Shown: positions 1,740 to 24,170, numbered from the whole stretch's first letter. The stretch: DNA of 63,432 bases, filler included, from Choristocarpus tenellus KU-1152 (GCA_964200185.2; 9 parts of 9 records of this genome joined end to end with filler, not necessarily neighbours in it), one strand, 5' to 3'. Made by a program: numbers and translations. Notes: generated by a model from the letters alone, not told the origin.

Positions 1740-3130
1740 TCAGCTTTGAGCACTCAAATCTTAGACTCAAGTGAGACACCTGAGGTCCTGTCATAAGGCA
1801 CCTGGCTGAATTTGCGACAACAACTCCAAACTTTCTGAATCCTCCCACTGACCTCAGTAGTAATAGCAGCATCGTTACTGATGCTTCCCCTAAGTAAGGT
1901 AAACAAACTTGCTGATCAGTCTGCTTGTTGGTCTGGTCCTACGCCTGGGTCTGCATGGTTTCGGCATCCTGCGATTAGGAGGTCCAAGATACACAGACTC
2001 CACCTTTTATTCTAATGCAGTCAGACCGAATGAACTGGTCACCTTCACAACCACTATCATCATCCTGGTCAGACCTTCTTGGGTCTTGGAGACAATACCT
2101 GGGTCATCAGCATAAAGAGGATACCTCACAAAAGCTGCTCAAGTGTTGTTGTACACCCTGGTGCTCCTCCTCCTCTGATCTGTTTTTTTGGAGGTCTCTT
2201 CGTGACAGCAAGGTCCTTGAAGATAGCCGGGTTATAGTTGAACCTCTTAAATGCCGAACCTAGCACTGCACTGAAGAAAATGCTAAAGGGATCAGAGCAA
2301 GAACATACCCCTCCCAAAGACCCTGTCCAACCTCAAACCAGCCTGTGAACTCACTATCATCCATGCAAGCACATGTCCTCATATTATCATGGATTGACGG
2401 ATGACAGGGATCATCTTTGGAGGTATGCTAAATTTGGACAGCATAACCCACAGCTAATTGCCATCAACAGAGTAACGTTCTTTCTGTGGATAGTCAAGAC
2501 ATATAAAGAGGGGTAAATGCTTTTCCCGGCCAAACTCTTGGTTGCCACGTAAAGTGTACATCATATCCATTGTGAATATTTGGGGTCCGAAACCACACTG
2601 CTCCTCATGAAGGATGTTCTACAATTTCCAGGTAATTCCCCAACCATTGTACAACAACTTCATGGAGGACTCTGCCAGCACGTGCTACCAATGAGATGCC
2701 TTTGTAATTGCTACGTCTTAAGTGATCTTTCTTCTTGTAGAGCATGGTAATGACTGCATCTTTCCAGACCTGTCCATAACCTTTTGGTTCCACACAGTCA
2801 ACACGGTCTTATGGAACCCCAGAGGATTCCAAGTCCTCCTGTAGGCCAAGCTTTAGAGCTCAACTGGAACATTATCGGGCCCCATGAGCTCCCCATTTCC
2901 CGTTGCCTGGGGTACTTCAGCCACTTCCATCATTATTGGTGAAGTAGCAAGGACTATGGGTGCGGGTCATTGATCGAGGGCTTCAACACTATGAAGGTTG
3001 AGATCAATCAACTTGGTATTAGGAACATTTTGAAGCATCTCCTCCGCAGTTCCATGGTGGATTCTTGCTCCCTGAGTAGCCTTTCCACAATCATCATGGA
3101 TGTGCTAAGAGGCCACTCTCTCTGGATCTC
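1740..3130 (-). mobile_element. Degraded non-LTR retrotransposon (RTE-like LINE) reverse transcriptase
   Basis: Collinear RT motifs broken by stops and frameshifts: WKDAVITMLYKKKD..SNYKGISLVARAGRVL (2605-2793), FSIFFSAVL (~2270), LYADDPGIVSKTQEGLTRMM (~2070-2120) and FVYL (~1900). Confidence 0.85.
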
Positions 3131-4369
3131 TTAACGTTGAAGCCTTTCGCTTACAAACACTGAACATAGGAATGTTTACTTACTATTAATCCTTGAGGTA
3201 CTCCTAACAAGTCTACGCGACTTAAATATATGCAGTGATTCTTGAATTTGAGTACATTTATACACTGTCACACCACATATTAAATAATCTGGACTTATTT
3301 TTAATGAAGAATACCCTACCCACAATGATTTTGGGAAAACATACTATTATTTTTCAAATAACATCTCTGCCAAGGTTGCATTCTCGTTTTTCTAATTCTC
3401 TGTATAAGGTTTTAAAATCCCCATATTGAGATTTTGTATATAAGATCTATTCTCATCATCACATGTTCCCCCTTCGCTACATAGATATCCAGAAATCGGA
3501 AACACACCAATCTTGTCTTCTCCTACAAAGATGCTCTCATGAAGAGTGGGTGTGAGAGTATGTACTCTTGAGTATCTTAACATATGAAGGGCTTAATGCA
3601 TCTATGATGGCGGTAATGAATGGAACACAAAAACACCTGGGTGTGATTCACATCTAAATAAAAAATAACCTTGAGTTTCATCAGTTCCATACAACCCGAA
3701 AAAACACCACACATGTCACAAAAAGAAAGGGGAAGAGGGATGCAAGGGTAATCAACCCAGGGAAAGAAATGCATTGGGAAAGGAGCATTCAGCAGAAAAC
3801 AGTGGTGGGGGTGGTTGCTTTGGTTGCCTTATCTGCTCCTTTAGCATGGCACAAATCTTCCCTGGATTGACACTCTCCAATGAAGCCTGTTGTGCTACTA
3901 ACCACACATTCATACCACCTGTCTGTGTAGGTAGGTTTGTCCTCGTGCTCCTGCCCTCATCTATGATCCTAAACTTCTCTTCATAACGTCATTTTGACTA
4001 CTCCTATGATTATCATAATAAACTACAACTATGTTCTTGTACTCAACTGCAAGCTTGAAAATCAACCATGCATGTGTCTCACCTCCTTCCACTAGTTAAT
4101 TGATTGCCGATCTAAAGAAGAGGACCATGCCATCTCTCACTGGTTAAAAGTGATTGCCAGGCTGACTAGTTGCACACCTACAACCAACAACACACATCTC
4201 TTGCCGGTGTCATAGTAGTAACGATTTCCAAGCGTCTTCTTGCAGGTACATCCACCTGTTCTTCTCCTGTCAACCTCCCCTCTGTTTTCCATCTGCAAGC
4301 TCCCCAAAGGTGCAACTGATCTTGCAAATAGGAGTCTACACAATCACACAGTTGTCTCGATACTGTCAT

Positions 4370-4810
4370 ATCTAGTCTTCACAATAGGGCATTTTTGAAG
4401 GACAGTGTGTGCCCCTGTTTGTGAAATCTGATGCAGTGCAGGAGGAAGTCGGGGTGAAGGGAGCGATCGTTTCACAATAGTGGAGACCTCGCAAGAGTAT
4501 ACATGTTTCACAACCATATAACATAATGTTAAGTACTTCGGGCTTGACATTATTCAGATTCCACCTCATGTGATACACCCAAATCCTGTCATAGAGCACT
4601 TTGACTGCATTTGTGGAAACAACCCCAGGTTTTGGTGCCTTTTTTTTCAGATCTCGTTGGTGATAACAGTTTCATCACTCAAGGTGTGTCTGAGGAAAAC
4701 AATATGATATGTCTGCTTGTAGTGTTGGCTCAACACCTGGATCCGCATGGTGTCTATGGCCTAATTGAGAGCCCGAGGTGCATAGTCTCTGTGTTGAGCT
4801 CCAACACAGT
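4370..4810 (-). mobile_element. Second RTE-like LINE 3' fragment
   Basis: LNIMLYGCETCIL resembles the xLLYGCETW motif downstream of RTE RT domains; the frame is disrupted. Confidence 0.65.
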
Positions 4811-6322
4811 CATGGATTAACCTTCTCAGGTCATATAGTTGCTGGTGTAATCTCTTTTTCCTATATTCGTTTTTTTCCCCCTTTTTTTGTTGGAATTTAT
4901 TTTTGTACTTTTGCTGCTCATTCTACAATTTTTTCAATTTCTTTGTTACATGCCTATTTTGTACCGTTTTATTACTGGAAGTTTTTTTTTGTGCTATTGT
5001 ATTTCTGTTGTCTTTGACCGTGGGTCAGAGCATGTTGTATGGTGAACATAAGCCAGTGGAGCTGAACATGGGGTGTGGGTAGGCATTGAAGTGCTCCCCA
5101 TCTCTGAAATAGATGCTCTAAAGTGTACAACAGTGTACTACAAGGTTGTTGGTCCCTACCCTACGATAGTCTGACATACACACACACACATATGCCATGT
5201 ATATAAATGCTTGTGCTTTATTTCATGGATAAATTACTTTAGTGGGTACAGTAGCATGGGGGGGCGGAGCACTACTTTGTTGTATGCCCTAATATAAAAA
5301 CAAACTAGCAGGAGGGTAGCCTAGAAATGCTCTTTAAAATAACTTTTTATGGGGTAACAAAAGAAAGGTATAAACAAATTCCCAGCACTTCCACACCACT
5401 ATCTCTTCAATCCTTAAGTACTCTAACCTGAGTTGGATCATCACAAACATACATACTCTGTTGCCATCAAAGCAATTCATATGAAGTGCAATGGTGCAAG
5501 AAAATAACCGGTGTGTGCCTGGTGCTATTTTATGTTGGGGGCTACAGAAATTAAATATTCGCTGGTACACAGAAGCATGCAAATATTTACTGCATAACAG
5601 TAATACTTTGATCACTCTACACTAAAAACAGTGAATACGCCCAGTTGGGGTATCTAGATGGGGGTGCAATGCATGCCCCCTTATCAATGCTTGTGTCAAC
5701 ACTGACAGAATCCGTTCCAAGCATGTCTTCACTAATCCCTTCCTTGTAAGTTTCTCTGCAATCCCAACTAGCACTATATACAAAACTATCGTTTTATAGT
5801 CAAACTCAAATTTGTCAAAGTTTAAAGTCTCTCCAAGCTAGAAATTTGCTGCAATGTCATGAGTCATCCAAGTTTGAGTCATTTCAGCTTCATCTATATA
5901 CACATATGCATCACAGAATCTTTGTTCAGTGCATACTCCCACAACAAACACTGTGATTCAGGGAACTCCCAACAAGCTAGCCCACCAAGTACACACTAGC
6001 AATTAATATCAATAACTACCATGCATGGTGTAGTGGAGGACTAGTTGTATCATCTGTTTGTGTTGCTCTCCAATGACATGATCAAAGTGAGTCCCTGTCA
6101 TTGTCCCAGCACATTATTGAGCCATGTTCAAAAAAAAATCAGAACTCTGCCTATGGCAATGACAATGGCCAAAAGAGAGCTATGGTGGAAGAAATATTGG
6201 TATAAATAAGTTGCCCTTGAATCAACGACACACAAAGCCTTACTCAATGTGCTCTGGATACCGTACAATATCAGGATTTTAGGTTAAGAAAAATTTGAAT
6301 GTGCACCTCATTTTTACACACG

Positions 6323-7852
6323 TCAAGTTTCCACTACCATTCCACCAGAAGGCTCATCATGCCAGAACTCATAAAATATCACAAAACGATTGGGCTGATC
6401 CAATGCCTTGTAAAGTCCAAAATGTCTTGCCAGAAAGGACCTCAGCATTTTGGACGGCCGGTCGAAAGCGAGTTCAGTTGGCTTGACCTGTTCATTCTGT
6501 GGAGGGTGAAAGGCACAATATTATGGACGCACAAACACGGGATATGGGATCCCAAATTGTGCTGGTGATGAATTAGATCGAGAGGTAACACCTCCACCAA
6601 AGAAAATTTAATGCCAGTAGGTGAAGCTCCAATATAATATTTCCTCGAACACTTGGTTTTTTGTGAATGCCAAAACAAGAAGATAATTTGCATGAAGAGA
6701 CTGCAAAACTACTACTAGCAAGAAAGGATCATTGCGCAACACAACACACCTCAAGGACATGTTTGAAGATCTTCAGCCCTATTCCCTCTCGCTGGACGCT
6801 CTCTTGGACATAGAAGTCTAGCACACATAGGGGATCACTCTCAGTCAGCTTATTGCCGTGTACCTAAAATTAAAAAAGTGATGAATATATTGGGACATAT
6901 ATATATATATATATATTATAATTGACCTGTTATAAAGCTCTGGAGGTGTCTTGTCAATGTTGTGGTCGACCTTATGTTTCCGAAAACAAGGGGACGGTGA
7001 ATCGGTCTGTGGTTTTGGGTGTTAAATACAACTCTTCATTCGCTGATACACAATTGAATTAATGGTAGTTGGCATCAAGACTGGGGGCAATGCATCCAAC
7101 CAGGTGCTCACTCCGTAGAGGAAGAGGTGTTTTCGTCCCAACTTCAAGAAGCCCAGGATACGCTTGCCGGCCAATTCACACATGATATACACCCTGTGAC
7201 TATAATTCTGCTTTAACTTTTCCATGGAGGTTATAGCCGAGTGTAGTCCTTGCGCCTGCGCGAATTCACGGCGGGTTCATGGAACATGGGATGAGAGGAA
7301 GGTCTAGGAGTTGGTCGATGTAGATATCAAGATACCATAAATATATAGAGGTCCATATACTTAGAGTATATATACCTGCTGCTTTTCAATAGAGTCCAGC
7401 ATCAACCGTATGTTTCATGTCCTTTTCCACCGTGTGTTGCAGAGTCAAGCTCAGACCTGAATAGACCCTCCCCACGACTCGCCGTACAACGAACAGAAAA
7501 GCCAGACAAGGAAGTATTCACAACCTGGGAACTTCAGCCGTACATTTGATGCCATTTGCATTGCCCTGTTTAAGTCGATAGTTGAACCGAAGATCTACAC
7601 ACACCTGACTGGAGAACTTCCCCATCTCGTCCAAAGCTTGCCCCACTAGCTTTGCATCGCTCTCCTTCAAGTTCGCTGGATATTGAGAATATTCAATGCA
7701 ATCGATGTTAGTCCCGTATTATCTGTTGTTGGACGCTAAACGATCATGTCCTACCCACCTATTCTTGCAGCATCCCACACAGACAAACTCGGCGTTAGAA
7801 TGACTGCTGCCGGGGTATTCATGGTTGAGCTTCGCTGTGTGCAACTCAACAT
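6323..7852 (-). CDS. ATAT1: Alpha-tubulin N-acetyltransferase (MEC-17/ATAT1 family), 5 exons
   Basis: Exons 7852(or 7822)-7759, 7675-7605, 7255-7112, 6863-6750 and 6496-6323 are all GT-AG and in frame. They give LDEMGKFSSQAQGLHSAITS, GFLKLGRKHLFL, PLCVLDFYVQESVQREGIG and LAFDRPSKMLRSFLARHF..QPNRFVIF, the diagnostic MEC-17 motifs. Confidence 0.93.
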
Positions 7853-8828
7853 CCACTGTTCGATTAATAGATAAGTGGATTTGTTTACATGTTCGATTTA
7901 CATGAGTGTAAACGGACAAACGAACAGTTTCAGGAAATAACAAAAATATTATCCATGGGGGGGATGAAAGAAAGCCTCCCGGAGATTTCCAACTTTTCCA
8001 TGTTTTTCGCTTATTGAGAGGGGACAGAGAAGAAATGCGTTAAGTGACATCTTCAGTGTTCGCTCGTCCCATTAGTCTTACAAACGTCATCCGACAAATA
8101 CTAAACTAACCGTTCCACTATTTTTGTGCGAGTGAGTGACTCCGCAAGTTGAAGGCACCTACTTCCTGGTTCTCCTTTTCTAACTTCTAGACAATTGTGA
8201 GTTTTTACACCCTCCATAGTGGCCGTGTGTGCGTTTTCAGGGAAATCAACACTTCTTTATGCCGCTAGGTGATAAAAATGAAGTCATAGCGAATAATGGC
8301 TATCCGAACTCATTCAGGTGTTTTCATCCTTGATTTGTGGTGCTTTCTTGCTACGGCTTGTCTTAAGTAGCGTGGTACCCGCCGTCGCATCGTCTACAGT
8401 TGTGTACGACAGTGTCACAATGTGTTCAGAGGAAATCCATCTGCCAAATCAATGCCCGCTCGACGACCTTACCCCAATACATTTGACCGTGACTGTCGCA
8501 GTCGACTTCCTATACGTAAGCGATTAAGGCAAAATGGTTCCTAACATTTTTGTATGCGAATGTTCCCTCTGCGGCTTGCTCTCGTCATAGGGGCGAGGGA
8601 GGGACAACACGCCGAGGAGGCTTCGGGTCACGAACTCCGTTTTCTTCACACATAGCAGTGAGAACCAGTTACTACGACGGTCCGCATCATCGTTTCCATT
8701 CGATGCCACCACCAGCCAACATCTCATTTCCAGTTTGCTTGACCGAAGGAGCTCGTAACGGCAAGGTCAACAAATACAAGCATCTCCCCACTGTTGCAGG
8801 GCTGTCGAAGCGGTCGCCATACGCTTAA
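7853..8828. promoter_or_regulatory. Divergent (bidirectional) promoter region between ATAT1 and the SET gene, CpG-rich
   Basis: Head-to-head start codons at 7852/7822 (-) and 8829 (+). CG dinucleotides are visibly denser here than in the flanking gene bodies. Confidence 0.55.
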
Positions 8829-11800
8829 ATGGAATTCGAAGAGGCAGCAATGGATATCTCACGATCCAACAGCACTTCTCCCATGAGTGACTCTGGGGGT
8901 TGCCTTATCTGTGGGAAGAATGATGAACATCAGTTCATACTACTTTGTGATGGGTGTGATGGGGAATTCCACACCCATTGTCTCACACCTCCCTTAGATC
9001 ACATCCCAGAAGGCGATTGGTTTTGTCAAGCCTGCATGGATGCTAGGACCCACAAACAAACCAGGTTAAAGAAATCTGACCCTACTAGAGCTGTGACAGC
9101 AATGCTGCCTACTGCCTCAACATCAAAGTGAGGATGGTCCAGGCGGGAAATGCGATGCACTTTACAATTCTGTATATATCGAGAGTTATGCGTCAAAAAT
9201 GTGCAACTGATGCCCTTTACTACTCTTGGTTTGAAATCGGTTTGGTTGTAGGAATTACTAGCGCCAGTGAATGGTGCTTGTCGTGGCATATCCTGTATGT
9301 ATGCATGCGTCTCGGCATGTACTTCAACAAGATGTTACCCAATCCCTCTGGTTCAGATTCTATGGTGTAAGCAAGACTGGCAAGGGTTGGCAGGCCAAGA
9401 TTACGTCCCCAAAGGAAGGAGAAACTGTAATCGGCATCTTTCAGGATGAGGAGGTACGAGCACATCAGTACACATACACTTGGCACCCCTACCTTACTTT
9501 GAACATCTTACACATTATACTAATCCATTGATTAACCAGGTACAACCCTACTGTATTTTGCTAGACACAAGTGTCGAGGTAGAGACCTTCCTTAGGCAGG
9601 ATCAGGTTTGCATCTTGTGATGTTGTAAAGGGACTAGTGCTTGTGTTCTTCTGTTCTGTATAGTGTCTCTAGATGTGGCTACATGGTCTTATCACCAGTG
9701 GAGATTTTCACATACACATTATCTAGAAGGCTGAGAAATGCCACTTCAAGCCTGTTGTTATTTAATCGTTATAGTAGTGTCCCTAAATGAAGAATCCAAC
9801 CTTTCTTCCTGGCTTGAAGGCATATTGACTGCACAAGTATTTATGCTTGAGCATCCTGCCTGAGTAGATGTGGCTGAATGGTGTAATATGTGCATCTAGG
9901 GAATTGACAGTAATGCCCCATTTGCCTATCTTCCGATCTCCATGCAATAGATGGCAGCACGTGCATATGACCAGGTTGCCATGGATCTGTATGGCAGTAC
10001 GGCTGAGCTCAATTTCCCGGTAAGGATACATTTCTTGTGTACTCCGAAATGTTTAGTAAATACTTGACAGTGAGTGGGTTCTTGGCATTTGTTGTGAAGC
10101 TGGCGGATTCCCTCTCTTTCCCACGCCCTGCTGTAGGCAAGGCTTGTGCTATAGTACTAGGTATCCTAAACTGAGTGGATCAAATTGTGTAGATCTGGAG
10201 TGGAGCTTGACAATGGATGACTTAGTTAGTGACTGTGATTGGGGCCTACTATGATACCTCCTACCTCTGACCTTGCCCTTGAAAGGAGGGGGTCAGAGCA
10301 GTGTAAATATGACTAATAGTTGAGGGGTGAAGCAGGGACACAACAATCATGGTGCAGAATGAGATATAGAGCATACAGGACGAGTGGCAGTAAAGATTTC
10401 CTTAGCTGAAAGTTCGTATAACCAGCACAGATATAGTAGGTCTGAGTATTTTGAAGGAGATGGATGTGTGCCGGAGATACCTCATCCACCAAGCGGTTCT
10501 AGTGGCTCGCTGCTAGGGGGAGATGACTCCTCAGACATGACCAATGTACTCCTTTTCCCTCAACACCTAGCTTTCTTTGTCCCCCTCTTGTCATCAAGAA
10601 ATGCGATCTACCTCTCTCTAGACCAACATCCACTGGGTGATGCAAGTCAGCATGGAAGAGGGCAAACATCATCTACCGAGCATAGTGATATTTAAGGTAG
10701 ATCAAGGTTGATGCCTCAATCAAAATGTAGTTGTTGCAAGGACAAGTGAGTCCGATTGGGTATGGTCTTGTCTCATGAAGTCATGTAGCTGGAACAATAC
10801 GGTTTGTGCTTGTATCCATCCTCTCTCTCACTCCAAGACCATTCTGTAGGTCCACAAGCTACTTTTTCCTCCCCTTCCCTTCTCCTCACTGCAGCCCTTC
10901 TGTTTATCACTATTGCTGCTCCCTCCGATTGTTCAATTTGTTGGTTACTGTTCAGGGAGGCATGGGTGTTGACTTGAAGGAGATGAACCAACCGCGCAGG
11001 CGTAAGAAGGCGAAGCGATTGGCAGAGTATGAGTACCCAGATGTTACTGTTAAGGTGATTGATACCCATGGTTTACTTGAAGCAAAGTGGAGTATCTCTT
11101 TGGTCCTCCAGCAAACCACAATGGGAAGAGGTTACTTCAGGAATGTGGGCGCTTTTTATGCACCCTCGGTCACATTTCTGCTCATCGACTTTTTTGTTTC
11201 TTGAAAATTGATTTGTGCCTCTCACCTCCCCATTATGTAACATTGATCTCATCCTACCATCGTCCACAATAAGTACTTATTCCCTTTCGTAGATGGAAGA
11301 GGCCATATCACAAAGTGTTTCTAGGCACCTTCTACAGCAGTTTATAGCAGTTTTTTTGTTTGCTTTGTCGGACTTGATAGTTATTATGCCTATTGTAATG
11401 TTAGGAGCAGACTGACCTACACAATATATGGTGCACTGCCCTGTTCTTTTGACTGGTCAATTTTTGAATGACAACAGGGTCTTAAGACCAGGGCAGGGGA
11501 TACTGCTTCTGGTGCCACTGAGAATGGGCCAAGGGCAACGCTTATAGAACATGGAATTGTTAAGGTTGCTGAAGGGAAAGTATTGGCCCCATCACCCAAA
11601 GGGAAAGGGGCAGCGGCAGTGGTGGGGTGGTATCCAATAGATCCAACTGTACAAGACAAGGGGAAAGGGGAAGGGACAGGCAAGGGGCCGTTGGTGGTGA
11701 ATTCCGATAAGGCCAAGTCGCCCAGAGGATTGTCAATGCTTGGTGGGTTCCCAACAGGGGAGCAATGGGGGGCGACAGTGAAGACTAAGAAGGATGTCAG

Positions 11801-14800
11801 ACAGGGCAAGGGTATAGCAAGAAGAGGAATTGAGGGTGTGGCAAAAGAGGGCAAAGGGATCTCAGGGGGGACTGGGACAAGGAAGGATGTGGGGATTGCT
11901 GCAAAGGATGCTCCAGACTCCATAGTAATTTCAGATGGGTTGGGTGAGATGTGCAAGACTGTGAGGAGTGAGGAGACTCAGGACCTAGGATCTACCGAGG
12001 AAACTGAAAAAAGGGCCAAGAGTGGGTCACACAATGGGGGGGCATCGTTGAGATCCAAGGGCTTGGGACCAGGCTCTTCAGTGAAGTCTCATTCGTTGTA
12101 TTCAGCATTAGCACGATCTCAAAATGAAACCCTAGGCAGGAAGGCTGGCACTCCAGGAAGGGTTGAAACAGATGGAGTGATGAAGAAATGGAAGGGTGGA
12201 TATCCATCTAAGAAGTCTAAGGAAAGAACAGTGTCCAAGAGCTCGAAATCCTCTGAAGGAAAGGAAAGGGAAATGGCCATTGTCAACTCGGGCCTTGTTG
12301 GGGAGGATGGCAATCAATTCTTGTGTGGGTAAGTGTTCTTGTAGTGTGGCAATCGTTCTTTACTTGATCGCATTTGGTGGGTGAAGCAATGATGCTGCCT
12401 CTGGGATCTCCATTGTCTTAACATGCACACTTCTTGTGTGTATTGACCCATTGTCTCTTTCACCCATCTGTGTGCAACTGCTGTTATTCCTAATGGTAGA
12501 GCTGGGTATTGTGGCCTTGTACACATGGCCCACTTTGACTCTTTTCCTATTGCTAGCCCCACTGTTCCCTTCGATCGCTCTCTTTACCTCTTGACCCCAT
12601 TGCCCATCATGTGACAAATTCTGCAATACATACCAGTGTTTGCGGGAAAACTGGTGAGGTGCTATGCTGTGACAATTGCCCGAAGGTCTTCCACAAGCTT
12701 TGTCTTGCCTTGGGAAGCAAGGCTCGCCTAGCTGCAGAGTTTCAGAGTGAGGCTGATCCATGGTTCTGCCCCCACTGTGTGAAGGCTGGAAAACTGAACA
12801 CAATAAATGGGGTGAGTGTTGGAGTAGGTTTCAGGTTTAGTGGGTGGGTAGTCTTGCGAGAAGGATGGTCATGGTGATGGGGTTTTGCAAGAGACTACAG
12901 GAGTACTGCATGGTGCAGTGAGGACCCTTGTCCACCGCTTCTACTGGAACAACATGGCATGGAATACACCAATGACAAGTTAGCAAACTACAATTAACTA
13001 GATCCATATCCACTCTTCTTGTGCCTATTCTGTTATTTCCTTTACTAAAATCCCTACTTGTGAATTCTGGAACTCACCATATGCCAGGAGACACCGGACT
13101 GGGCCAGCATGAAGCAGGCCATGAGCAAGGTGGGTGAAGGCAGCATTTCTCGGTCTACATGTGTTGAAGGGGAGGGTGCTGGCATTGACCCTTGCAACAA
13201 TGTTTCTCCATCAGCAGTCTTTGCTCCTGAGCTAGCAAACCGGCTCCTGTACTCACTCCTTTATGAGGATTTCTATGTGGCCCCTAGGCACCCACGCCGG
13301 CTGTGCATGAGGGAGGATGCAGAGAAGAGGAATGGAGAAGAGAAGATATGTGAACCATCGGTGTTTTCCCAAGAGGGGTCAAACTCCCCTGGGCCAACAG
13401 GAGTTGGACCACATCATGGTGCAAGAGTCAGGCCTGGGTTTGCCACATCCTTAGCTCTGAGATCTTTTAATGCGGTTGTGACTCCCTTCAGAGACAGTGT
13501 ACAAGGACCTATCTGTAAAGGATCCAATGTGGGGCTGCCTGTGGCTCAGGGAGAGTTGGGACGTCGGCCAGGTGGTGGAGCCTTGAAATTTGCACAGCAA
13601 ACTGGGACTGTCCTTCCTGAAGTCCAACATTGCTTGAAGGAAGGAGCAACCCCAGATGCTGATCATGATACAGGCAAAGTCTACTGTCCAAGGGTCGGTG
13701 GAAACTCTAGGGATAATCTTGAACCCTCTCGAAGGAATGTGAGCAGAGGATTGGTATCTCCTGGCAAGGGACCTTCTGAACAGATGGGGTTGGTTCAAGG
13801 ATGGGAGGTTCCTGACTCAGTCAACACACCTATGCGAGGATCTTTAGTGCGAGCTATGCCCGGGGCAGCTGGGCTTGGTTCAGAGATCATTGAGCTGCAT
13901 TTTTCTGAGGACCCTCAGTGTGTGAGTGGAGTTCAGCATTCCACATTTGAGGGAGATATGCAGGTAATAGATAAAGGTGAAGGGGTGAGGAACAGCATGG
14001 ACGATATTGACAATGCAGTCTTCAGGAGAGAGGGAGATGATGAGGGTGACTGTATGAGTGTGGATGACAACCATAGTCAAGAAAGTGGTGAGGAGGAACA
14101 GCACAGTGACAAAGCGGGTAACACATATTCTAAGAGTAATACAGAGGTTGAGGGTTACAGCCTTGATGGCAACAGCACTGGTGTGACTTGGGTGGTGGGG
14201 TTGGAAGGCAGTAGCCACCATCGTATGTGGAACTTGAAGCATATGCAGGTGTGCACAGGCGGGGATGAGGTAGGTCAAAGGAAATCATGCTTCTACTGCA
14301 GTGGGCAGCCTGATGGTGCGGCCATGGCATGCCCCAACTCTGGTTTGGCCAATGTCCACATCTTTTGCTTCTTGTGTCTTGACTCTCGCTGGGGTCTTGA
14401 AAAGTCGTTGCTGGTCAAGGGACGTGTAAAGGTTTGTTTCCCTCTGGAATAGTGCTGTGAAAGATGTTCTGATGATGATATAGCCTGATTTTGCAGAGCA
14501 TAAGGAACAATGTCCCCACATTTTGGAACTTGGAAGCACTTACATTTTAAGGTTGGAGGGTATAACAAGATGAGCTTCTGAGTTCTTACCCTCCAGGTTT
14601 GTATCTTTATTCAATATTTTTTGCTGGAAGGGTCATTCGGATAGTTCACAAATTTAGCTTTCCAATTTTTTCTACTGCTGGTGTTGACCAAGTGGTTTAA
14701 TTGCCATCATGGTTAAAGAGTTTCCTCAAAAGCTTGAGGGAAAAACAAGCTGACCACTAGCTGACACTCCCCTGATCATGCCCTTGTCCCTCCCACACTC

Positions 14801-17800
14801 TGGCTTTGAATTGCTCTAGTGGGAGTGCCCTGCCTGCATGGAGCTCAGTCAGCGCAAGCGCCGTATCTCCAGTCGGAGTTCAGTGGGAAGTAGTGATAAA
14901 TATCGAGCCAAGAACAGTGCAACAAGGTGGGAGGATGGCGAGGATGGCAGAAGGAGAGAAGGCAGGTTGGGCAGAGGGGTGGAGGGGCATGCAGGATCCA
15001 GAGGAGGGAGCTGGGATGATGAGGAGGTCGTTGCAGAGACACATGCCAGGCCTAGTGGAGATGATTCGAGAATGAATTTGCACAACGATCCTGAAGTTGT
15101 TGAGGTGAGATATGTCGAGACCTGTTACTAGTAGAAGAAGTCCCCACAGGTCATACATGTATAGTGTTATGTATGCTGTGTGGTGTGTTCAGCTGGGCAT
15201 TAATACTTGTGGCAAATCAGATGGAGACTGAAAGTTTCATTGTGATACCGGGGATTCGGACAGTAGTTGGGGGTTGTTGAGCTATGCGGGCAGTGTGATC
15301 AGGAAGAGGATAGTAGGGGCATTGTGGGACATGCCCCTAGAGTGTTTGGTGAAATACCAATTGTGTGATACATATTGAAGGGCTCAAGATGCTGAAGAAG
15401 AGCACAATAGATTGGGGGCTCCAATGAGGCTTGTATGGCAGTGCTGCAAAATATCATATAGTCTTCCTGTATACAGAAGATGCTGCTCGAATACCCTACC
15501 AATCAGGTCCACCAAATACTTTGCAATACCTCTGCAAGTAGACACCCAGCACTTTTTGACCATGACCCATAATATCTTGAGATGGCTTGTTCTCTTGCAA
15601 TGCTGCAACAAGTGCACACATTCTAAGGGCAGCCATTGGCACACTCTATCTTATAACACACAGATGTCTCTGGTCAATTCTGTGCTTGTGCTCCTAGGCT
15701 TGCCCTTGCATTTGGTCTTTCGCCCACAACCCACCCAAATGTGCATCCCCTGATTTCTTCCCTTGCGACAGAAGCCCTCTAAAGAGGAGGGGCGACTACT
15801 GCGATTGGTGTACACAATATTTGTTGACCATCTGCAGCGAGGAGACCCATACAAATTGTTTGCTGAACCTGTTGATCCGAATGTGCCTGGATATGCTGAG
15901 GTCATCCGGTGGCCCATGGATTTCTCCACAATACGTGGGAAGATCTTCAATGGGGAGTATTTATCCATGGGAGCCCTGGCAAGGGATATTGCCCTGCTCT
16001 GTGGCAATGCCATCACCTTCAATCCACCAGGCACCATATACCACAGCATTGCCAAGTGCGTTTCTTGCTGGGAGGGTTCCCTGTGGACATGAATGTGATT
16101 CGATTGGGTGGAGTGGTGGGGAAGGTAGAAGATATGGCTACAGGATTTTGTGGCTTGCTATTGGGGGGTATTGACCCCTTTTTCCTCTACCTATCCCACA
16201 TTAATGTGATTGCTCATCATGCCCATCCCATGTGTTGTTCTTCTCACACCTCTTGCATTCCACTCTGTCAATCTTGCCCCTTGAAACTTTCCCCTCCTGT
16301 GAACCCTGCTTCCCATCTCTTGTATGTTGCTCCTTGTACTATCTTACGCTCTTGCCCCTCACTCCTCCCCATCTTCCCATCTCCTTCCTTGGCTCCCCCG
16401 TGTCCCCTGTCCCAATATGTACTTTTTGCACACAGGTCGATGCTTGAGACAGCAGAGATGATTTGGCCTTCTGCACTGGACCTCCTAAATCATCTTTGGT
16501 CTGTGGAAATGTTGGCTGAAGAAAATGGACGAGCTGGTCCCAACACCTCTGGCCGTGCCACAGCCGCACTAGAGGGTCGCTTTGCTGGATTTGAACTGAC
16601 ACCTGCCAATGAGGATGCCTACTACATGCATTTGGCAGTGACAAGGGCTGCCACTGCTTCCCGTACGGCTGAGACAGAGGGACTGTGCAAGGCCGGGCAT
16701 GTTAAAGGCTCAATGCCTGCCCCTTCAATGGAAGCTGCAGATGGGGATGTGGACTTGACCATGGGAACGGGGAATAGGGGTAAAGAAGAATTGGACAGTG
16801 AGGCAGTCCGTGTAGCTGTGAATGTAGCGACCAGTCTGGTGGAGCTGTATACTCCTGGGGACATGTGGGAAGAGGAGTGCCTGCTGAGGGAGGCTGTGGC
16901 GACTTCAAGGTCCCATCGAAGGGAGGAGGAGACCAGGTTAGTAATTATTGGTGTTGGTTTTGCATGCATTGGTCAATGGCACTGTAGCGTTTTGGTGATG
17001 TTGTGTAGTTATTGACTTGAAATAGATAAGGGTAAGTTGTCTCTGCAGGGGTCCAACCTTGGTTATTTTTTTTGTCAAGATAACCTTTCCAAATTTATGT
17101 CAGTCAGATTCAAAATGCAAAAATACTCACACACAGGGCATGAGGGCTAGATATGAAAGGGATTTTACTGCACACCGGCTGGTTCCTTATTCTCTGAACC
17201 AGATGAGGAAGTACAAGCAATAGTTGTAGTGACAGGGTAGGGTCTTAGGGAGACTGAGAAGTTGTTGGAGACATTGGTGGTCATCAAGTGTTCCCCAATA
17301 TGCATCATTCTGCTAATCACAATGTGCACTTCTGTAGTTGTTTGGGGGTACATGACCAACGTTAGTGAAATACAGGTTGGTAGAGGTGGGATTGTGGTTA
17401 GATGAATTTGAAGTCACGGGGACAAGGAATATCTTTGTTAGTTGTTGCACCAAGCAATGTGACGATGCATACTTTTCCTTTGGTGTTGATGACTACTCCA
17501 GAATAGATGTGAGGAAACAAGTGGGTGAGAGAGGGGTCATGTTATTAGAAGTTTTGCAGTGCTAGTATTTTACAAGATTAGATTGAGACCTTGCGCCTAA
17601 TTGTTAATATATTCCAACCACAAGCTGCCGCTCTGTCCTCTCATGGTCACTCAGCATGTACATACTTTGAAGTAGTTTTCCTTGTTCCTTGCACGCAATG
17701 CAGTTCAAGTGGTAGGCTCATTCTGAATGGATCTTGTGGAAGGGTAATTCCTCAATAGACAAGTGCATTGGTCTTCCCTCCACCCTGCCTTTTTCTCTAA

Positions 17801-20800
17801 CTTCCCATAATTCGCCCTCTACTTCCAGGAATGAAAGTGGAAGCGCACGTTGCAATCCTATTGATTCTGCTATGCGAGAGGCTCACAAATATCATTCAAT
17901 ACCACTAGCCATTCCCAAGAAGCCCACCCTAGTCCCAGACTCCCCAGAGAGCAAGTCAAACCAAACCACCAGCAAGTCCCATGCTACCAAGGCACACAGC
18001 ACAAGCAATGGGCGGCAACCAGCATCAGAGCCAGTCAAGGCTGCAGCTGGGTCTGGGGGACAGGCACCAGAGTGGAAGGTGGTTGAGGCGGCAGAGGGGA
18101 TGGCAAGGGGAGGGGAAGAAGGCAAGCGCTTGAGATCAATTGTTATGCGGCTACTGCGGTTAGCGGCAGGGCGACTTCGGACACGATTCCGAGTGGAGGC
18201 ATCCAAAGTGCAGGTAAGATGGGTTATTCTGTTCCGGACGTTGTAACAATGAGGTTAAGGAGATAGGGGTGTGAATATATAGCAACATCTACCCCAATTC
18301 CATGGCCTCCTTGCCCATGTGCATAGGATGCCTTTACCATGTAATGCCCCATTCCCTTTCAAGGGTACTGTTTTTGTTGTTCTTGGCATCACTCATACAG
18401 GGAGAGTTATGCAGCAGACGCTACAGTAGTAGTGATCTGTGCCTGCTACCAGAAAACCGGGAAAGGTTGGACAATTAGTGTTTCAGGCAAAGGTACAAAG
18501 GTGAACCTTACCTTTCTGCTCATTGATACTATGCGGCATTCAGACAGGTTGGTGAATCTCACCGCAATAGATACCGTGTCAGTTACTTTATGGATACCCC
18601 TGGCAGTAGTTGAGAACAAACAACTCACCATGCCTCAGTCTTATTCCTCCTATATCTGTATTGACTAATGGCCGCCTTCACTACCAAAGCACTGCCGTAC
18701 CTATATGGTAAACCTGAATTGGCCTAGTTTTCCCCATGCACTGCACTCTCTATCCCACCTACATGTGTGCACCTGCTACTCCTACAGGGTCTGGGTGTTT
18801 TTGCCAATGAGGGGATCAGGGCGCATGAACTGGTGGGAGAGTTTCTTGGTGAGCAAGTGGGACGAACAGTGGCTGATAGGCGAGTTGCAGAGTACAAGAA
18901 AGCTGGGCTTTCGGTAAGAGAAATTTTGTGATACGGCAATTAAGGGGGTATCATTATGGACATAGCAGGGCATAGCAGGGCAAAAGCATCCTATTTGCTA
19001 AAGGCACACTGAAGTAATGCAGACTATTCTGTCAGTGTAAGCGTTACTTTTTATGCCCCATATTTTCTACCCCTCAATATCGTTATTATTTCGTTCATGT
19101 TGCTGTCACACTCAAGTCTTTTTAAAACTATGTTCCTCTTCAAGGATTCCAAAAATATTATGTGAGGGCACAGTGCTATAGATTTGCAGGGATTGTGTAT
19201 TTTGCATAGTGAGGATTTATACAACGATGTTGCTTATTTCGATGTACTTTGAAGCAGTAAAATGCGAAATGATCTCTGATGTTAATATGCCAAGGTTGGG
19301 ATGGATGTCCTACTGAGGGGTAGGTAGGAACAGGGGGTGTAATATTTTAATGTGGCCCTTGTGGGTTATTAATTCACTTCCTGCTTCATTTTCCTGGTAC
19401 TTGTTGACTGCCTAGTCATCTAATCTAATCTAGTGCTTTCAGGTATGAGAGTATTTTTTCAGGGGTGATGATAATATTTTCTTACTACAGTTGTGTGGAT
19501 TGATGCTCTACTTAGTACTAATCGAATAAACATATTCCCATTCAAGTCCGGGTGATGAGTATTTCCTTCTGGCTGATTCCCTTTCTTTTTTTTATTCACT
19601 TACCATAATGTCTTCCCGCGCCTGTGTGGAAGAACTTCATGCAAAGAATAGGTGATGGGACTTTCCTCGACGCCACACGGAAGGGAAACATGTTGAGATT
19701 TGTCAACCACTCCTGTGAACCCAACTGCCACCTCAGGATGGTGAGTGCAAGAATTTTTGACAGAAAAACATTCCCACAAACGTGGTTGTGGGTCCATGAC
19801 TGATGCGGAATAGAGTTGAGAGGTCACTATGTCTTGATTCAGTTAGCCGTTGGGACTTGAACATTTTTTAAGTTGAGGTTGAGCTCTACTCGAGCCATAT
19901 CAGGTATGAAATCTTACAGGTCCTATCCCAAATTCGATCTATGCTCTCCTTGAGCAACAAGAAGAGTTGCCATGATTCGTGTACAAATTCTTTCTCCTGT
20001 AAAATATCTCTAGGTTCAGTGCAAAACTGTGGGCGAATGAAACTGACAATAGATGCAAGAGATATAAGATGATGGCAGGTTGCGGGCCTTGCTTGGTATG
20101 AATCCTGAGTAAGGTTTATCCTTTGGGGGATATCTGTTTAGTCCCCATTTCTCACTTTCCTGGGACCTGGTATTGTGAGGGTGCTACATGACCACTAACC
20201 CCAATAAACTGGCAGGCACAACACAGTATAGTTCAAAACTTGATCTCACCCTTGTGTGAAGAAAGAAAGTACCTTCTATAGTACATACAAGTATTATGCA
20301 CAGTATTTCACACCTTATTACATGCTTATCACACATGTAATGATATCGCAATCATGATAGTTTGATATATCTGAGCCAATAAACACTAGAGTTTCAAACA
20401 ATTAATATGGGCTGTGATCAGAAAAACATGGGGGATATCTCTCCTTTGTGTAGCTCCTCAGGTTTCTTGCAGTATCTTATTCATGTTGCTGAAACACAAA
20501 TTCCATGGTCCACCTTGCCATTGCATGATCAAACCAACTGTTCTTGGTACCAGTAGGAATGGATTTCAATTCCCAGTTCGTACGATGATCCTGTAGAAAC
20601 TGCTGACAGGGAAAATACTGAACAAAAAGTAAAAGTATTCAGCATGAGCGAGACAATACAATTTGAATGTAGAGATGGGTGGAAGATCGATGAGTTGTGG
20701 GTTAGCTTATTCCAACCTGCAAAAGAAGGAACAAGCCTCGGTATCTAGAGAGGCATCTCGAGACAATGGGCCACTAATTGAAGTGAAGATAAAAATAAAA

Positions 20801-23800
20801 GTGTTGAAAACAATACTTTTTGTATTGTGCGGAGATTGGACTGCATATATTTTGAACTACAATATGGCTTGAGTTGATTTGGGAACTCCCACTGCCTCTT
20901 GAAAGGACTGTTCACAAGTATAGGTTTCGATTATCAAGAACCACCAATTGTACTCCAGAGTATATGATGCTTCGGAAGCACAGTTTTTCGGACACACGAG
21001 ATTATGCTCATTTTTTGAGCTGAAAAATTGCACACCTCGGACAACATAAGAAATACTGACGTAACATGACCTAATGGTTTGAGTCATATATCTGCAGAGC
21101 ATTTTCCGGACATTGGACCTCATAGAACAAATGCCCACTGGCAATAAACTAACACTATAGGGAAAATGGGATCAATGTTGTCCTGGACAACTGATGTTGT
21201 TGACCAAATGGTCCCAGAGTTTGTCCTGGACACAATCTATATTGTAGACCAAATGACTCTGAGTGTTGTCCTGGACAATGTATGTTTTGGACAATTGGGC
21301 ACCAAAGGTTTTCCTGAACAAAAGCCTTCTTTCAGACAACGTCAATGCTCCCAACCGTGATGGTGTAACAACTAATGTTAAGCAGAATGTTTGCTACTTC
21401 ACAATGTGATGGTGTTGTGTTACATTTGACATGCCTTGAAACTTGCACGAAGAAGGGTTTTCCATGTATGAGTGACTGATATTGAGTTACTGGTATCACT
21501 CTTCCATAACATACACTATGCATTGTAGAATGTAGAATGCATGTCAGCACTCAAGCGTTCCACTCCTTAAGTGTATTGTGCAATGGTCAAGTGTTGACCC
21601 AGAAGACTCATATGCTATTCATGGTAGCAGGTATTACAGAGCAGATGGTGACAGGTGTTGCCCCAGACAATATATGTTATAGAGCAACAGGTCTGCCGGT
21701 TGGCCAAGAGAGGTTATACTCCGGCGTATTAGAGTAAATGACGCCAAGCACTGTGCTGTACAAGGGATGTTGCTTTGCAAATATACATCAAGCGTTTTCC
21801 AGAACAGTGTATGTACATTATGGAGAAAGTAGTCCTGAATACTGTCCTGGACATTGGATGTAGAGCAAATGGACCCTGGTATGCTCCCAGTGATGGACAT
21901 TACAGAGAAAATGCCACTGAGTCTATTCGTGCACAACAGACATTAAAGAGAAAACGCAACTGGGGTTATTCCGGACAATGAGCACTGTAAACTAAACGAC
22001 TCTTGACAACTGACTTTATAGGTCAGATTTAATTGAGCATTCTAGGGCAACGCTTATGCTGAGCATTTTGTTATTAGGGCCCATAGTACCCTAGATGGAG
22101 GGGTCAAGCATCCATTCGGAGCCTGTGTGACCCTATAGTGATTTCATGTCATATATGGTAACGTGTCAGATGCAAAGCAATTTCCTTTATCTCAACTCAC
22201 AGTCCTTTTCTATCCCCGTGCCTAGACTGAACCCGAAGAAAAACTACCCGCAAAGCAGGCATCAAACTGGGGTATCTTACAACACCCCATCAAGCCCCCC
22301 AAAAGGACCACTTGGGGTAAACACCCTCCCCCCTCTAAGATAATATGGGGCTATAGGTGAGATGTTGTGCTGTAGTGCATGAAGTATAACCAAGACTTTG
22401 TTGCAATGTGTATCCGTTCCTGGGCTCAACAAATCATTATGTAGTGCTTCAGGTGATTGAGGGACTCACAGAGCCTGTCCATAGAGTTACAGGGCAAGTT
22501 CATCATGCTATTGTGCTACAATTTGCGGGTATGATTACATAAAATTTTGCATGTATGCAAGAAAACTGAATACATGCAAATACATACATTGGCGGGAAAT
22601 TGGTATATGAGGGTGAGGTAAACGTGGAAATGACAGGAGGGCAGATTTTGTAACTTGTACATAATTGCGTGTGAGTTGGAAGCTTCTCATTATGCACATT
22701 GACACTCATTTGCTAGTTCAATGGTATTGTGGGAGTCATTTTGCGGCACTGTGCACATTTGGCTGGGCATAGTTGTACAAATTATTTTGTATCGAAGCAC
22801 AAAGATGCGTAAGTTGATGCAGCCAACAATGGAACACGTAAGTGGGAGAGTTGCATCATCTCCATAGTGAGGAGTGTACAAATACTTGAATGTTTTTTTT
22901 CTCTATTCTAGATTGCTTCTACTTTCAGTACAGTATTGCTACAGTAAGTTGTGTTCGGGATATGCATTTTTGGGAAATTTAAGGTTGATATGACTAAGAA
23001 ACCTGTTATATCAGTGCTGTGGAGCAACTGTGTTGAATATATGGGAAAACTTGAGATGTACCTGTGTAATCATTTGTTCGTCACGAGAATCAATGTGGTG
23101 GTGGTGTAAGCTGTTATCACTGACTCTTGTACTGTCTACTAATAGTAACTGCATGCACCTGTGGGTGATGTAATGGGTGACTACTGGAAGACCGCACAAC
23201 AAATGCTGAGTGTTGCTGTGTATGGAGTAGAGTATGAAAGCTCCTAGAGCGAATCCAAAATTGTCAACAAGATCAAATCTAGGGAGCTAACCTCTGTACT
23301 ACGAAGCATATCCTATAGTGATTGACTCATCCATTCAAAATGACCACAACATGCCAAGGAGTGTTCTAACATGAATTAGATGGTGAAAAGTCGCATGTAC
23401 AAAATCCTTCAGCATGGTCAGTAGGACTGCATTACCAGTACACTCTCTGCTACTTTGCGATCTGCCATCGCTATACTACTGATACGCCAGAAAAGTGTGA
23501 TAAAAAGGTGCATCATGCCCTGGACAGTACTAAGTGGTACTGTTGTGAGTTGGTCAGTAGAGTTGATGGGCTACTTCACCAATAGCTAAGTTTCTTTGGA
23601 TCAAGGTTTTAAGTACGAAATAGGGGCCTTGTTCTGGGTGGGTCGCAGAAAAATTGGAAATCCCACTTTCTTGCTATGTGGAAATCAGGAGTTGACAGAG
23701 TGGTACGATGTTATGCGTTTACCACAACGTGTAGAAGTAATTTAATACTTCGTTCGGAATTAAATGTAATACAACTTTTAGATCATGATGCTGCTATGCA

Positions 23801-24170
23801 CTAGAATGAACAGGTGCATACAAACCCTATATATTCAATTGGGCTAAGCAAATCTATTGAATATGGTGTGTGTAACCTAATGTCATGATAATATGCTGAT
23901 ACAAATCATTTATAAAATGCCCGACTTGCCCTCTTCCTTCATCTAGAATAACCTCCTTGTTGATCTCATCCGTTGCTTGTTGTTCCTCATTAGGTTGAAA
24001 TTGCTGGACATAAACGCATGTTTATTTTTGCACTTCAAGAACTAGAGGCGGGTGAAGAACTCCTATACAGCTACCCCCCACTGGTTGGATCCAGTCGAGG
24101 AGAGGTTGCACCAAGGTGTTGCTGCGGTGCCCCCAGTTGCTGGGGGCGCATATCAGTACCTGTGCATTGA
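8829..24170 (+). CDS. Multidomain histone-lysine methyltransferase: PHD - AP2 - PHD - RING-like ZnF - bromodomain - SET - post-SET (SET1/Trx-like), ~1578 aa, 14 exons
   Basis: Hand model with GT-AG exons 8829-9064, 9357-9453, 9951-10019, 10956-11054, 11478-12328, 12637-12811, 13088-14431, 14820-15104, 15772-16055, 16436-16936, 17829-18213, 18788-18913, 19633-19740 and 23994-24170. The total is 4737 nt and all junction phases are compatible. Motifs: CLICGKNDEHQFILLCDGCDGEFHTHC..WFC (PHD), DATRKGNMLRFVNHSCEPNC and GEELLYSY (SET), CCCGAPSC (post-SET). Confidence 0.85.
9357..10019 (+). other. AP2/ERF DNA-binding domain within the SET gene (split over exons 1-3)
   Basis: Spliced sequence TRFYGVSKTGKGWQAKITSPKEGETVIGIFQDEEMAARAYDQVAMDLYGSTAELNFP matches the AP2 consensus (YRGV..W.A.I...LG.F.T.E.AARAYD.A....G..A.LNFP). 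Confidence 0.9.
12305..12790 (+). other. Second PHD finger within the SET gene
   Basis: Spliced DGNQFLCGVCGKTGEVLCCDNCPKVFHKLCL...WFCPHC fits the C4HC3 pattern. Confidence 0.9.
14285..14840 (+). other. RING-like (C3HC4) zinc finger within the SET gene
   Basis: Spliced CFYC-x10-C-x8-H-x2-CFLC-LDSRW...WECPAC. Confidence 0.7.
15772..16470 (+). other. Bromodomain within the SET gene
   Basis: DPYKLFAEPVDPNVPGYAEVIRWPMDFSTIRGKI..GEY....LARDIALLCGNAITFNPPGTIYHSIAK; the acetyl-lysine-binding Asn (FN) is retained. Confidence 0.93.
21153..22140. mobile_element. Putative non-autonomous CACTA-like element in the last intron of the SET gene
   Basis: Termini CACTATAGGG (21153) and CCCTATAGTG (22131-22140), with repeated near-palindromic TTGTCCTGGACAA motifs at ~21178, 21221, 21266, 21842 and 21968. 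No 3-bp TSD is visible. Confidence 0.45.

Follow-up and report, generated by a model that had tools for sequence, protein, structure and literature searches.

A KMT2-type histone methyltransferase gene with a probable AP2 domain in the brown alga Choristocarpus tenellus

Recruitment of Trithorax/COMPASS histone methyltransferases is usually ascribed to transcription factors, CpG-binding CXXC modules and RNA polymerase II. In a survey of SET proteins of Archaeplastida, however, the Trithorax Class III-3 (PHD + SET, no PWWP) is described as able to carry an additional AP2, a case given without sequence, species or experiment (PMC5725981), and histone deacetylases of oomycetes possess an N-terminal PHD followed by two AP2 domains and Med27 (PMC5112689). 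Here we describe a gene from Choristocarpus tenellus KU-1152 (GCA_964200185.2) that lies on the + strand at 8829-24170 of a 63,432-nt stretch of DNA, filler included, here referred to as the window. The window joins 9 parts of 9 records of this genome end to end, which are not necessarily neighbours in it, and all positions without a contig name are counted from its first letter. The locus is very probably one expressed gene, encoding in order a PHD finger, an AP2 domain, a basic patch, a low-complexity spacer, a second PHD finger, a Cys-rich finger, a bromodomain and a KMT2-type SET/post-SET.

Two further comparisons come from brown algae themselves. The catalogue of histone modifiers of Ectocarpus contains many methyltransferases with novel domain structures (PMC7784034), and two of them, of unknown function, are of concern here: Ec-12_006400, listed as 'ZF-PHD + MBD + BRD + SET' and filed under KMT1E-F/H3K9, and Ec-12_006600, listed as 'BRD + SET' without category, in which InterPro also finds a PHD (PMC7784034, supplement 6). 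Moreover, according to another study, brown algae have neither PRC2 nor DNA methylation, and they possess lineage-specific SET families (PMC13076208). AP2 is mentioned neither in that 2026 survey of brown-algal chromatin genes (PMC13076208) nor in a eukaryote-wide chromatin survey, and no AP2-SET protein is described in the Phaeoexplorer-related papers that we searched.

Gene model, spliced contig and paralogue

The 14 exons extend from an ATG at 8829 to a stop codon at 24168-24170, and when joined they translate into an open reading frame (ORF) of 1599 amino acids (aa) with no internal stop; exons 1-7 by themselves make a 978-aa frame without stops. Runs X1 and X2 are of DNA type and cover the stretch without a gap, while run X3 contains no more than roughly one half of the words sampled from 8829-18828. 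A contig of 4932 nt from X3 (k-mer depth 80), placed on 8700-14699, covers the exons and skips six stretches. Its blocks are 8700-9127, 9357-9453, 9951-10019, 10956-11054, 11478-12328, 12637-12811 and 13088-14431, and the skipped stretches (9128-9356, 9454-9950, 10020-10955, 11055-11477, 12329-12636 and 12812-13087) each begin with GT and end with AG. Since this exon-only contig occurs in X3 while the DNA runs are gapless, we regard X3 as transcriptome-like; the spliced form is absent from X1 and X2.

Beyond 14431 the contig continues for 1581 nt, which equals the summed lengths of exons 8-12 (285+284+501+385+126), and the first 30 nt of exon 8 (start 14820, preceded by AG) were recognized at its loose 3' end. 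Most likely it continues past the bromodomain and ends with exon 12, the first SET exon. Splice sites of exons 8-14 were chosen by GT/AG, phase and homology. At the other side, part of the 5' untranslated region (8700-8828, +) belongs to the block that is unbroken over 8700-9127, and the contig reaches 288 nt further 5'. An in-frame stop codon stands directly before the ATG within this unbroken, genome-matching part, and the coding start is therefore placed at 8829. In intron 3, a separate X3 contig of 151 nt (10030-10180) was found at a depth of 4.6, as against 80 for the spliced contig, which fits a trace of unspliced pre-mRNA.

By searches with single exons, we found a paralogue of the gene in the same genome (assembly G000, 164 Mb in 27,310 contigs). 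It lies on the - strand of three small contigs, C16305 (782-2217), C4923 (911-7893) and C5514 (7600-7773), corresponding to loci L023, L024, L028 and L025. C16305 carries a PHD1-like exon (60% identity) and both halves of the AP2 domain (about 60% for the N-terminal and 76% for the C-terminal half), with introns at the same places. On C4923 follow, in order, PHD2 (67%), exon 7 with the eight ligands of the finger, exon 8, the bromodomain (73%), exon 10 (53%, with the same splice phases), exon 11 (53%), exon 12 (81%) and exon 13 (76%), and the last exon is found on C5514 (57%). Overall, protein identity of the domain exons is 55-81%. The splice sites stand at the same codon positions at the end of exon 7 and in exons 8-14, including the acceptors of exons 8 and 14 and the position of the stop codon; the exceptions are the acceptor of exon 9, which is shifted by 3 nt, and exon 8, which ends with one more codon. 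The last exon of the paralogue is on another contig, so that intron 13 is long there too. When the two introns flanking the AP2 parts were compared between both copies, no similarity was detected. The ratio of nonsynonymous to synonymous substitution (dN/dS) between the copies stands at 0.34 in AP2, at 0.27 in either PHD finger and at 0.14 in the bromodomain, and in SET it ranges over 0.08-0.29; these values come from small samples with dS near saturation in places. The whole architecture, AP2 included, thus appears to have been kept under purifying selection in two diverged copies, with the PHD-AP2 part and the bromo-SET part of the paralogue on separate contigs.

That separation is one reason to consider whether the gene model, or a chimeric contig, fuses what are really two adjacent genes, one for a PHD-AP2 factor and one for a PHD-bromo-SET enzyme. 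Contigs can bridge genes, and AP2 may be lacking from the annotation of a relative in Ectocarpus (PMC7784034, supplement 5/6). However, a single contig holds PHD1, AP2, PHD2 and the finger, connected via spliced in-frame junctions without a stop, its length fits a continuation through the bromodomain to the first SET exon, and neither a stop codon nor an alternative start occurs between the two parts; we hold such a merger to be very improbable. Even less credence, close to none, is due to the explanation that we are dealing with a duplicate that is decaying or has lost its function. The locus is indeed one of a duplicated pair, with repeats in and around it, but the 1599-aa ORF is intact, the spliced contig has a k-mer depth of 80, no catalytic or ligand motif is missing and dN/dS lies clearly below 1.

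The initial annotation had drawn the locus as a phase-consistent model of 14 exons that unites the PHD-AP2 and bromo-SET parts in one gene. This model is borne out by six of its 13 introns, which are seen as X3 junctions, by the uninterrupted ORF and by a paralogue of the same layout, and the unity of the two parts by the spliced in-frame contig and its length fit into the first SET exon. The order of domains that it gave, from PHD, AP2 and PHD through a Cys-rich finger and bromodomain to SET/post-SET, likewise agrees with the contig junctions and the paralogue.

The AP2 domain and the other modules upstream of SET

The AP2 domain (aa 100-155) is encoded by two small exons. Exon 2 (9357-9453, +; joints 9127>9357 and 9453>9951) supplies the N-terminal half, that is, the beta-sheet part with WQAKI, and exon 3 (9951-10019, +; bounded by X3 joints) the C-terminal half with the helix, AARAYD...LNFP. 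Together with the two bases that close exon 1, they encode the motifs of a typical AP2, YxGV, WQAKI, AARAYD and LNFP, as seen in a three-frame reading of 9040-10260. The two introns that interrupt the AP2-coding stretch in the X3 contig, 9454-9950 being one of them, had been proposed before, and both proved to be GT..AG junctions of that contig. Skipping exon 2 (97 nt), or exons 2 and 3 together (69 nt for exon 3), would shift the frame, so that the N-terminal half of AP2 is obligatory for every full-length product.

Exon 3 alone (23 aa) has ERF096, WRI1 and AtERF1 as its top matches among 177,635 PDB sequences, and the region of similarity is the helix of their AP2/ERF domains. Exon 2 alone gave no match in the PDB, and it aligns to residues 94-124, in the AP2 stretch, of a protein here called P0151. 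The spliced aa 96-160 match P0151 with 43% identity over 61 aa (45 bits), spanning both junctions without large gaps, and also match the unsplit ORF L001 of the same genome with 43% identity over 56 aa (44 bits). P0151 contains HNH_3 and AP2, and it was the single match to the L001 ORF in a word search of 5.8 billion proteins. A scan of the genome with PF00847 found four other AP2 loci; the split exons 2/3 were not picked up by it. Taken together, the assignment of this region to AP2 is well supported by these alignments, though not formally closed. Loci L001-L003 are further AP2-type ORFs of the genome; L001 is unsplit and of ERF/HNH type, and L002 and L003 are of another type, GV(S/Y/C)W...KW.

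A third gene with a related beginning is located on the - strand of contig C215 at about 5729-11811 (loci L022 and L027). It possesses a PHD, an unsplit AP2-like stretch (YRGVHW...ILNFP), which has 33% identity by tblastn and no Pfam match, and a second PHD split by an intron. It further includes an 804-aa low-complexity ORF with AT-hook-like repeats (GRPPL/GRGRPRK), and no enzyme domain was seen in it. Present in the window gene, its paralogue and the C215 gene, PHD-AP2 looks like a recurring cassette.

What the AP2 domain does is less certain than its presence. That the enzyme could target itself to DNA through AP2, as the initial annotation suggested, is a reasonable idea; sequence-specific targeting by this domain comes close to an even chance and falls just short of it. 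The main rival is that AP2 here is a domesticated relic of an HNH-AP2 mobile element, serving as a low-specificity anchor on DNA or nucleosomes, or as a surface for protein contacts, and not as a reader of motifs. It is suggested by the closest match in the 5.8-billion-protein search being the HNH_3 + AP2 protein P0151, and by the strand of WQAKI type, which is shared with P0151 and is unlike the Arg-rich strand of ERF proteins. KMT2 enzymes, moreover, commonly carry low-specificity DNA binders (CXXC, AT-hooks). On the other side, AP2 is kept in both paralogues with a dN/dS of ~0.34, similar to PHD1, and the combination of PHD and AP2 is also present in C215 and in oomycete histone deacetylases (PMC5112689), which points to a working module, although specificity is not implied by this. 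We hold the relic explanation to be unlikely.

The remaining modules upstream of SET are of three kinds. First, the two PHD fingers and the bromodomain named by the initial annotation match Pfam above the cut-offs. PHD1 (aa 25-69, nt 8901-9035) is in exon 1 (8829-9127, +), which holds the start codon and ends in phase 2 at the GT..AG joint 9127>9357, and its open segment 8829-9128 matches PHD at E 1.1e-12. PHD2 (aa 471-519) is in exon 6 (12637-12811, +), bounded by X3 joints, with E 1.2e-7 for the segment 12557-12874. The scores are 48.1 and 32.0 bits, respectively, against a PF00628 cut-off of 24. The bromodomain is in exon 9 (15772-16055, +) and matches at E 1.9e-17 over 15754-16089, with 63.5 bits against the PF00439 cut-off of 21.7; PVD...GY and TFN are present, which we take to be the conserved residues of the acetyl-lysine pocket.

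Second, a Cys-rich finger (aa 931-984) crosses the junction of exons 7 and 8. Exon 7 (13088-14431, +; joint 12811>13088, donor at 14431) consists of a long, poorly conserved region followed by six of the ligands (nt 14288-14377), and exon 8 (14820-15104, +; its start is read by the X3 contig, and its donor is GAG|GTGAGA, phase 0) begins with the last CxxC (nt 14826-14837) and goes on as a charged linker. The finger reads C-x2-C-x10-C-x8-H-x2-C-x2-C-x20-C-x2-C, and 8/8 of its Cys/His ligands are kept in the paralogue. It had been described as C3HC4-like, or RING-like. The eight conserved ligands and their C3HC4 order uphold the former part, while the spacing of 8 between the third Cys and the His departs from the RING pattern that we used, C-x2-C-x(9-39)-C-x(1-3)-H-x(2-3)-C-x2-C-x(4-48)-C-x2-C, and no RING profile matched. 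In Pfam, where this intron-spanning finger was scanned in parts, neither RING nor PHD was found, just zf-4CXXC_R1 at E 0.022. With a spacing unlike RING or PHD, it is best called an unclassified zinc finger.

Third, there are the linkers. Exon 4 (10956-11054, +; joints 10019>10956 and 11054>11478) carries a basic patch, PRRRKKAKR (aa 168-176), that resembles a nuclear localization signal. Exon 5 (11478-12328, +; between X3 joints) is by composition of low complexity, rich in Gly, Lys and Ser, and its last codons contain the first Cys of PHD2. Exon 10 (16436-16936, +; placed by splice sites and phase) holds the end of a bromodomain helix and then a conserved region of no known family. Neither exon 5 nor exon 10 has a Pfam match.

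The SET domain and the proposed function

SET spans exons 12-14 without interruption and has a length of about 135 aa, and Pfam recognized pieces of it in three open segments (18728-18928, 19609-19800 and 23994-24167). The SET domain starts in exon 12 (18788-18913, +; GLGVFA), which is also reached by the length fit of the X3 contig. Exon 13 (19633-19740, +; SET at E 2.1e-7) contains the core, RFVNHSCEPNC. Exon 14 (23994-24170, +) contains the end of SET, EELLYSY (aa 1562-1568, the ELxYxY motif), and the post-SET CxCx4C, CCCGAPSC (aa 1583-1590, nt 24117-24140), which aligned with the post-SET of Set1. The NHSC motif is intact, and the ORF ends 10 residues past the post-SET motif, as a KMT2-like C-terminus does. 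The SET/post-SET of the initial annotation is thus confirmed by Pfam on three exons and by CxCx4C at the C-terminus.

Searches of the PDB placed this domain near KMT2 enzymes. Yeast Set1 is the best match of exon 12. For exon 13 the order is KMT2A (2.3e-9), KMT2B and then Set1, with the KMT2A alignment covering RF(V/I)NHSCEPNC, and for exon 14 it is Set1 (COMPASS, 1.6e-7), NSD1 (one chain) and KMT2A. The remaining NSD, ASH1L, SETD2 and EZH2 chains rank lower, EHMT1 is found only at E ~0.8, and SETDB chains are absent from the PDB match lists of exons 12, 13 and 14. By this PDB ranking, SET stands nearer to Set1/MLL than to the remaining SET families. Upstream, exon 11 (17829-18213, +; placed by splice sites) includes GSARC (aa 1339-1343, nt 17839-17853) and a basic stretch before SET. 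GSARC is about 120 aa before SET, is GSSRC in the paralogue, and resembles what we take to be the WDR5-binding WIN motif of KMT2 enzymes (G-S/C-A-R-x). No pre-SET/AWS Cys cluster is present in exon 11, and Pfam gave no AWS or Pre-SET match.

The domain had been called SET1-like. This name holds as far as the KMT2 (Set1/MLL/Trx) family is concerned, by the PDB ranking, and does not hold in the sense of canonical SET1. In the exons and ORFs, scanned singly so that an intron-split domain could escape, Pfam matched neither RRM and N-SET (SET1 type) nor FYRN/FYRC, CXXC and PWWP (MLL/Trx type). Moreover, an unsplit SET1-type SET/post-SET is located on contig C6695 at 2764-3195 (+; locus L026, Pfam SET 3.5e-20), ending with CxCGxxxCRKYIN, and has 39% identity to the SET domain of the window gene. 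Since this separate canonical SET1-type domain exists in the genome, we regard the window gene as a member of the KMT2 family and not as the SET1 orthologue.

As SET is closest to Set1/KMT2A, lacks pre-SET/AWS and has intact NHSC, Tyr and post-SET motifs, it is predicted, with somewhat better than even chances, to be an H3K4 methyltransferase. The alternative is that another histone lysine (e.g. H3K9 or H3K36) or a non-histone protein is methylated. It is favoured by the identity of just 39% to the canonical SET1-type domain on C6695, by N-SET, RRM and FYR not being found, by a possibly related Ectocarpus gene that is filed under KMT1E-F/H3K9 (PMC7784034) and by the lineage-specific SET families of brown algae (PMC13076208). 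However, Set1/KMT2A rank first for all three SET exons, with EHMT1 at E ~0.8, there is no pre-SET/AWS Cys cluster, SET is not split by an insertion and the C-terminus is KMT2-like. Traits of KMT1E/F (SETDB1/2-like) are not seen either, with no Pfam match to Pre-SET or MBD and a SET without a long insertion. A target other than H3K4 seems to us quite unlikely.

We propose that the modules work together as follows. AP2 and the adjoining basic patch would bind DNA and tether the enzyme at particular motifs, the PHD fingers and the bromodomain would serve as readers of histone tails, and the SET domain would methylate histone H3, most likely at K4, with the GSAR motif upstream of it docking WDR5-type partners. 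Recruitment, done elsewhere by separate transcription factors, CXXC or AT-hooks, would be built into the writer itself. As a whole, this explanation, which comprises the gene, its architecture and a KMT2-type writer with AP2 targeting, appears moderately probable.

Several points weigh against it. No run is recorded as RNA, the library type of X3 included; the junctions downstream of 14431 (exons 8-14) were placed by the model and not seen directly, and exons 13 and 14 rest on phase, on KMT2A/Set1 matches and on the splice sites of the paralogue, with no RNA evidence. The AP2 halves, scanned separately against Pfam, gave no match, and the support for this domain is indirect, coming from the PDB matches of exon 3 and from the alignments of exon 2 and of the spliced aa 96-160; the anchors P0151 and L001 themselves score 31 bits against PF00847 (E 3e-7), slightly below the cut-off of 33.3. 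In the paralogue, His replaces the first Tyr of ELxYxY (Tyr here and in MLL1) and Ser replaces Ala in GSAR. Finally, no orthologue from other species was recovered in the protein and metagenome searches given below, and conservation is seen in the own genome only.

In these searches, exon 7 (448 aa) had no match among the 5.8 billion proteins of the word search, and the bromodomain exon had no candidate. An exhaustive search of representatives with the bromodomain exon gave, as its best 150, mostly multi-bromodomain proteins (2-9 matched stretches each), and none of these 150 has a SET or AP2 region like that of the window gene. A close orthologue (at least about 55% bromodomain identity) would exceed the 91-bit floor of this list and is therefore absent from that representative library, while more distant ones may fall below the floor. 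From metagenomes, a stand-alone SET protein of 145 aa on a low-GC contig was matched and rejected as an orthologue, the other metagenome scan had no match, and the ESM Atlas gave generic bromodomain clusters only.

We also consider a wider picture, which is tentative and somewhat doubtful. In it, the gene would represent a lineage-specific, Trithorax-type family of H3K4 methyltransferases in brown algae that recruits itself to cis-elements via AP2, and PHD-AP2 would be a reusable 'address label' of stramenopiles, attached to SET writers and to the HDAC erasers of oomycetes. If this is true, one protein acting as transcription factor, reader and writer could directly set developmental or life-cycle gene programmes. 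An enzyme with a potentially sequence-specific DNA binder of plant/apicomplexan type would also be a simple and genetically tractable system for the DNA-encoded placement of an activating mark.

Surroundings and comparison with described systems

On the - strand at 7025-7276, an exon matches PF05301 (MEC-17 / alpha-tubulin N-acetyltransferase; E 1.5e-9, 38 bits). The gene to which it belongs probably forms a head-to-head pair with the methyltransferase gene, about 1.1-1.5 kb separating the exon from the start of the 5' UTR. A remnant of a LINE reverse transcriptase at 4375-4671 (-), an impression gained by eye, was dropped as Pfam gave no confirmation of it. At 22078-22349, intron 13 (19741-23993, +; 4253 nt) contains a dispersed repeat some 270 bp long, identified by a DNA search of the own genome. 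This repeat has 612 candidate copies, and all of the 40 that were scored (40/40) match elsewhere in the genome with 74-88% identity. It is SINE-like in size and copy number and has no tRNA, Rfam or Pfam match. Two tandem repeats were also found, one in intron 13 (21176-21278, 45 bp x 2.3) and one at the border of exon 5 and intron 5 (12308-12360, 20 bp x 2.7). No Rfam family and no tRNA was detected in scans of the window. Elsewhere in the genome, the family of fucoxanthin-chlorophyll a/c proteins accounts for 60 matches to the light-harvesting profile, which are intron-poor (e.g. C1179:12261-12728, L030), and one such gene has about 91% identity over 156 residues with FCP17 in PDB 9ygv, the photosystem I-FCP structure from giant kelp (Macrocystis pyrifera; PMC13219633). 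This similarity puts the genome within the brown algae or very close to them, in agreement with the stramenopiles named in the initial annotation.

Small AP2 exons like those described here seem easily missed in gene models. AP2 and MBD presumably belong to one structural superfamily, and the 'MBD' of Ec-12_006400 may thus be an AP2. If so, Ec-12_006400 and Ec-12_006600 would probably be orthologues, which we offer as a lead. They resemble each other in coming from a brown alga, in being two related genes and in having the same domain order if 'MBD' stands at the AP2 position; they differ in that AP2 is listed for neither Ectocarpus gene, and the comparison is one of domain labels only. In any case, the Ectocarpus entry 'PHD+MBD+BRD+SET / H3K9' merits re-examination.

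Among better known systems, the KMT2 family (yeast Set1/COMPASS, PDB 6chg; KMT2A/MLL1; Trithorax) shares with the window gene a C-terminal SET and post-SET without pre-SET, and the GSAR motif upstream of SET resembles its WIN motif. As in MLL/Trx, PHD fingers and a bromodomain stand upstream of SET, with an N-terminal DNA binder where MLL has CXXC and AT-hooks. The difference is that this binder is AP2, and that RRM, N-SET, FYRN/FYRC, CXXC and PWWP were not found. The domain itself resembles those of AP2/ERF factors, ApiAP2 factors and HNH-AP2 endonucleases, with about 56 aa, a strand-strand-strand-helix order and the motifs YxGV, WxAxI, AARAYD and LNFP. In those proteins, however, AP2 is usually the sole globular domain or stands beside a nuclease, whereas here it is an intron-split module of a 1599-aa enzyme.

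The initial annotation knew of no characterised protein with such an architecture. That remains true to the extent that AP2 fusions have so far been listed without being characterised, but similar combinations are already contained in PMC5725981 and PMC5112689, and possibly in PMC7784034. The oomycete histone deacetylases (PMC5112689) are also stramenopile chromatin enzymes with an N-terminal PHD-AP2 cassette; they differ in being deacetylases (erasers) and not SET writers and in having two AP2 copies, and the likeness is one of domains, not of sequence. Trithorax Class III-3 with AP2 (PMC5725981) is the same kind of fusion, PHD and SET (with post-SET), no PWWP and an extra AP2, known from a domain survey; it belongs to another eukaryotic supergroup and is likened here by its domain list alone. 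What is new in the present case is a KMT2-type enzyme with an AP2 module supported by the junctions of a spliced contig, and its occurrence in a brown alga.

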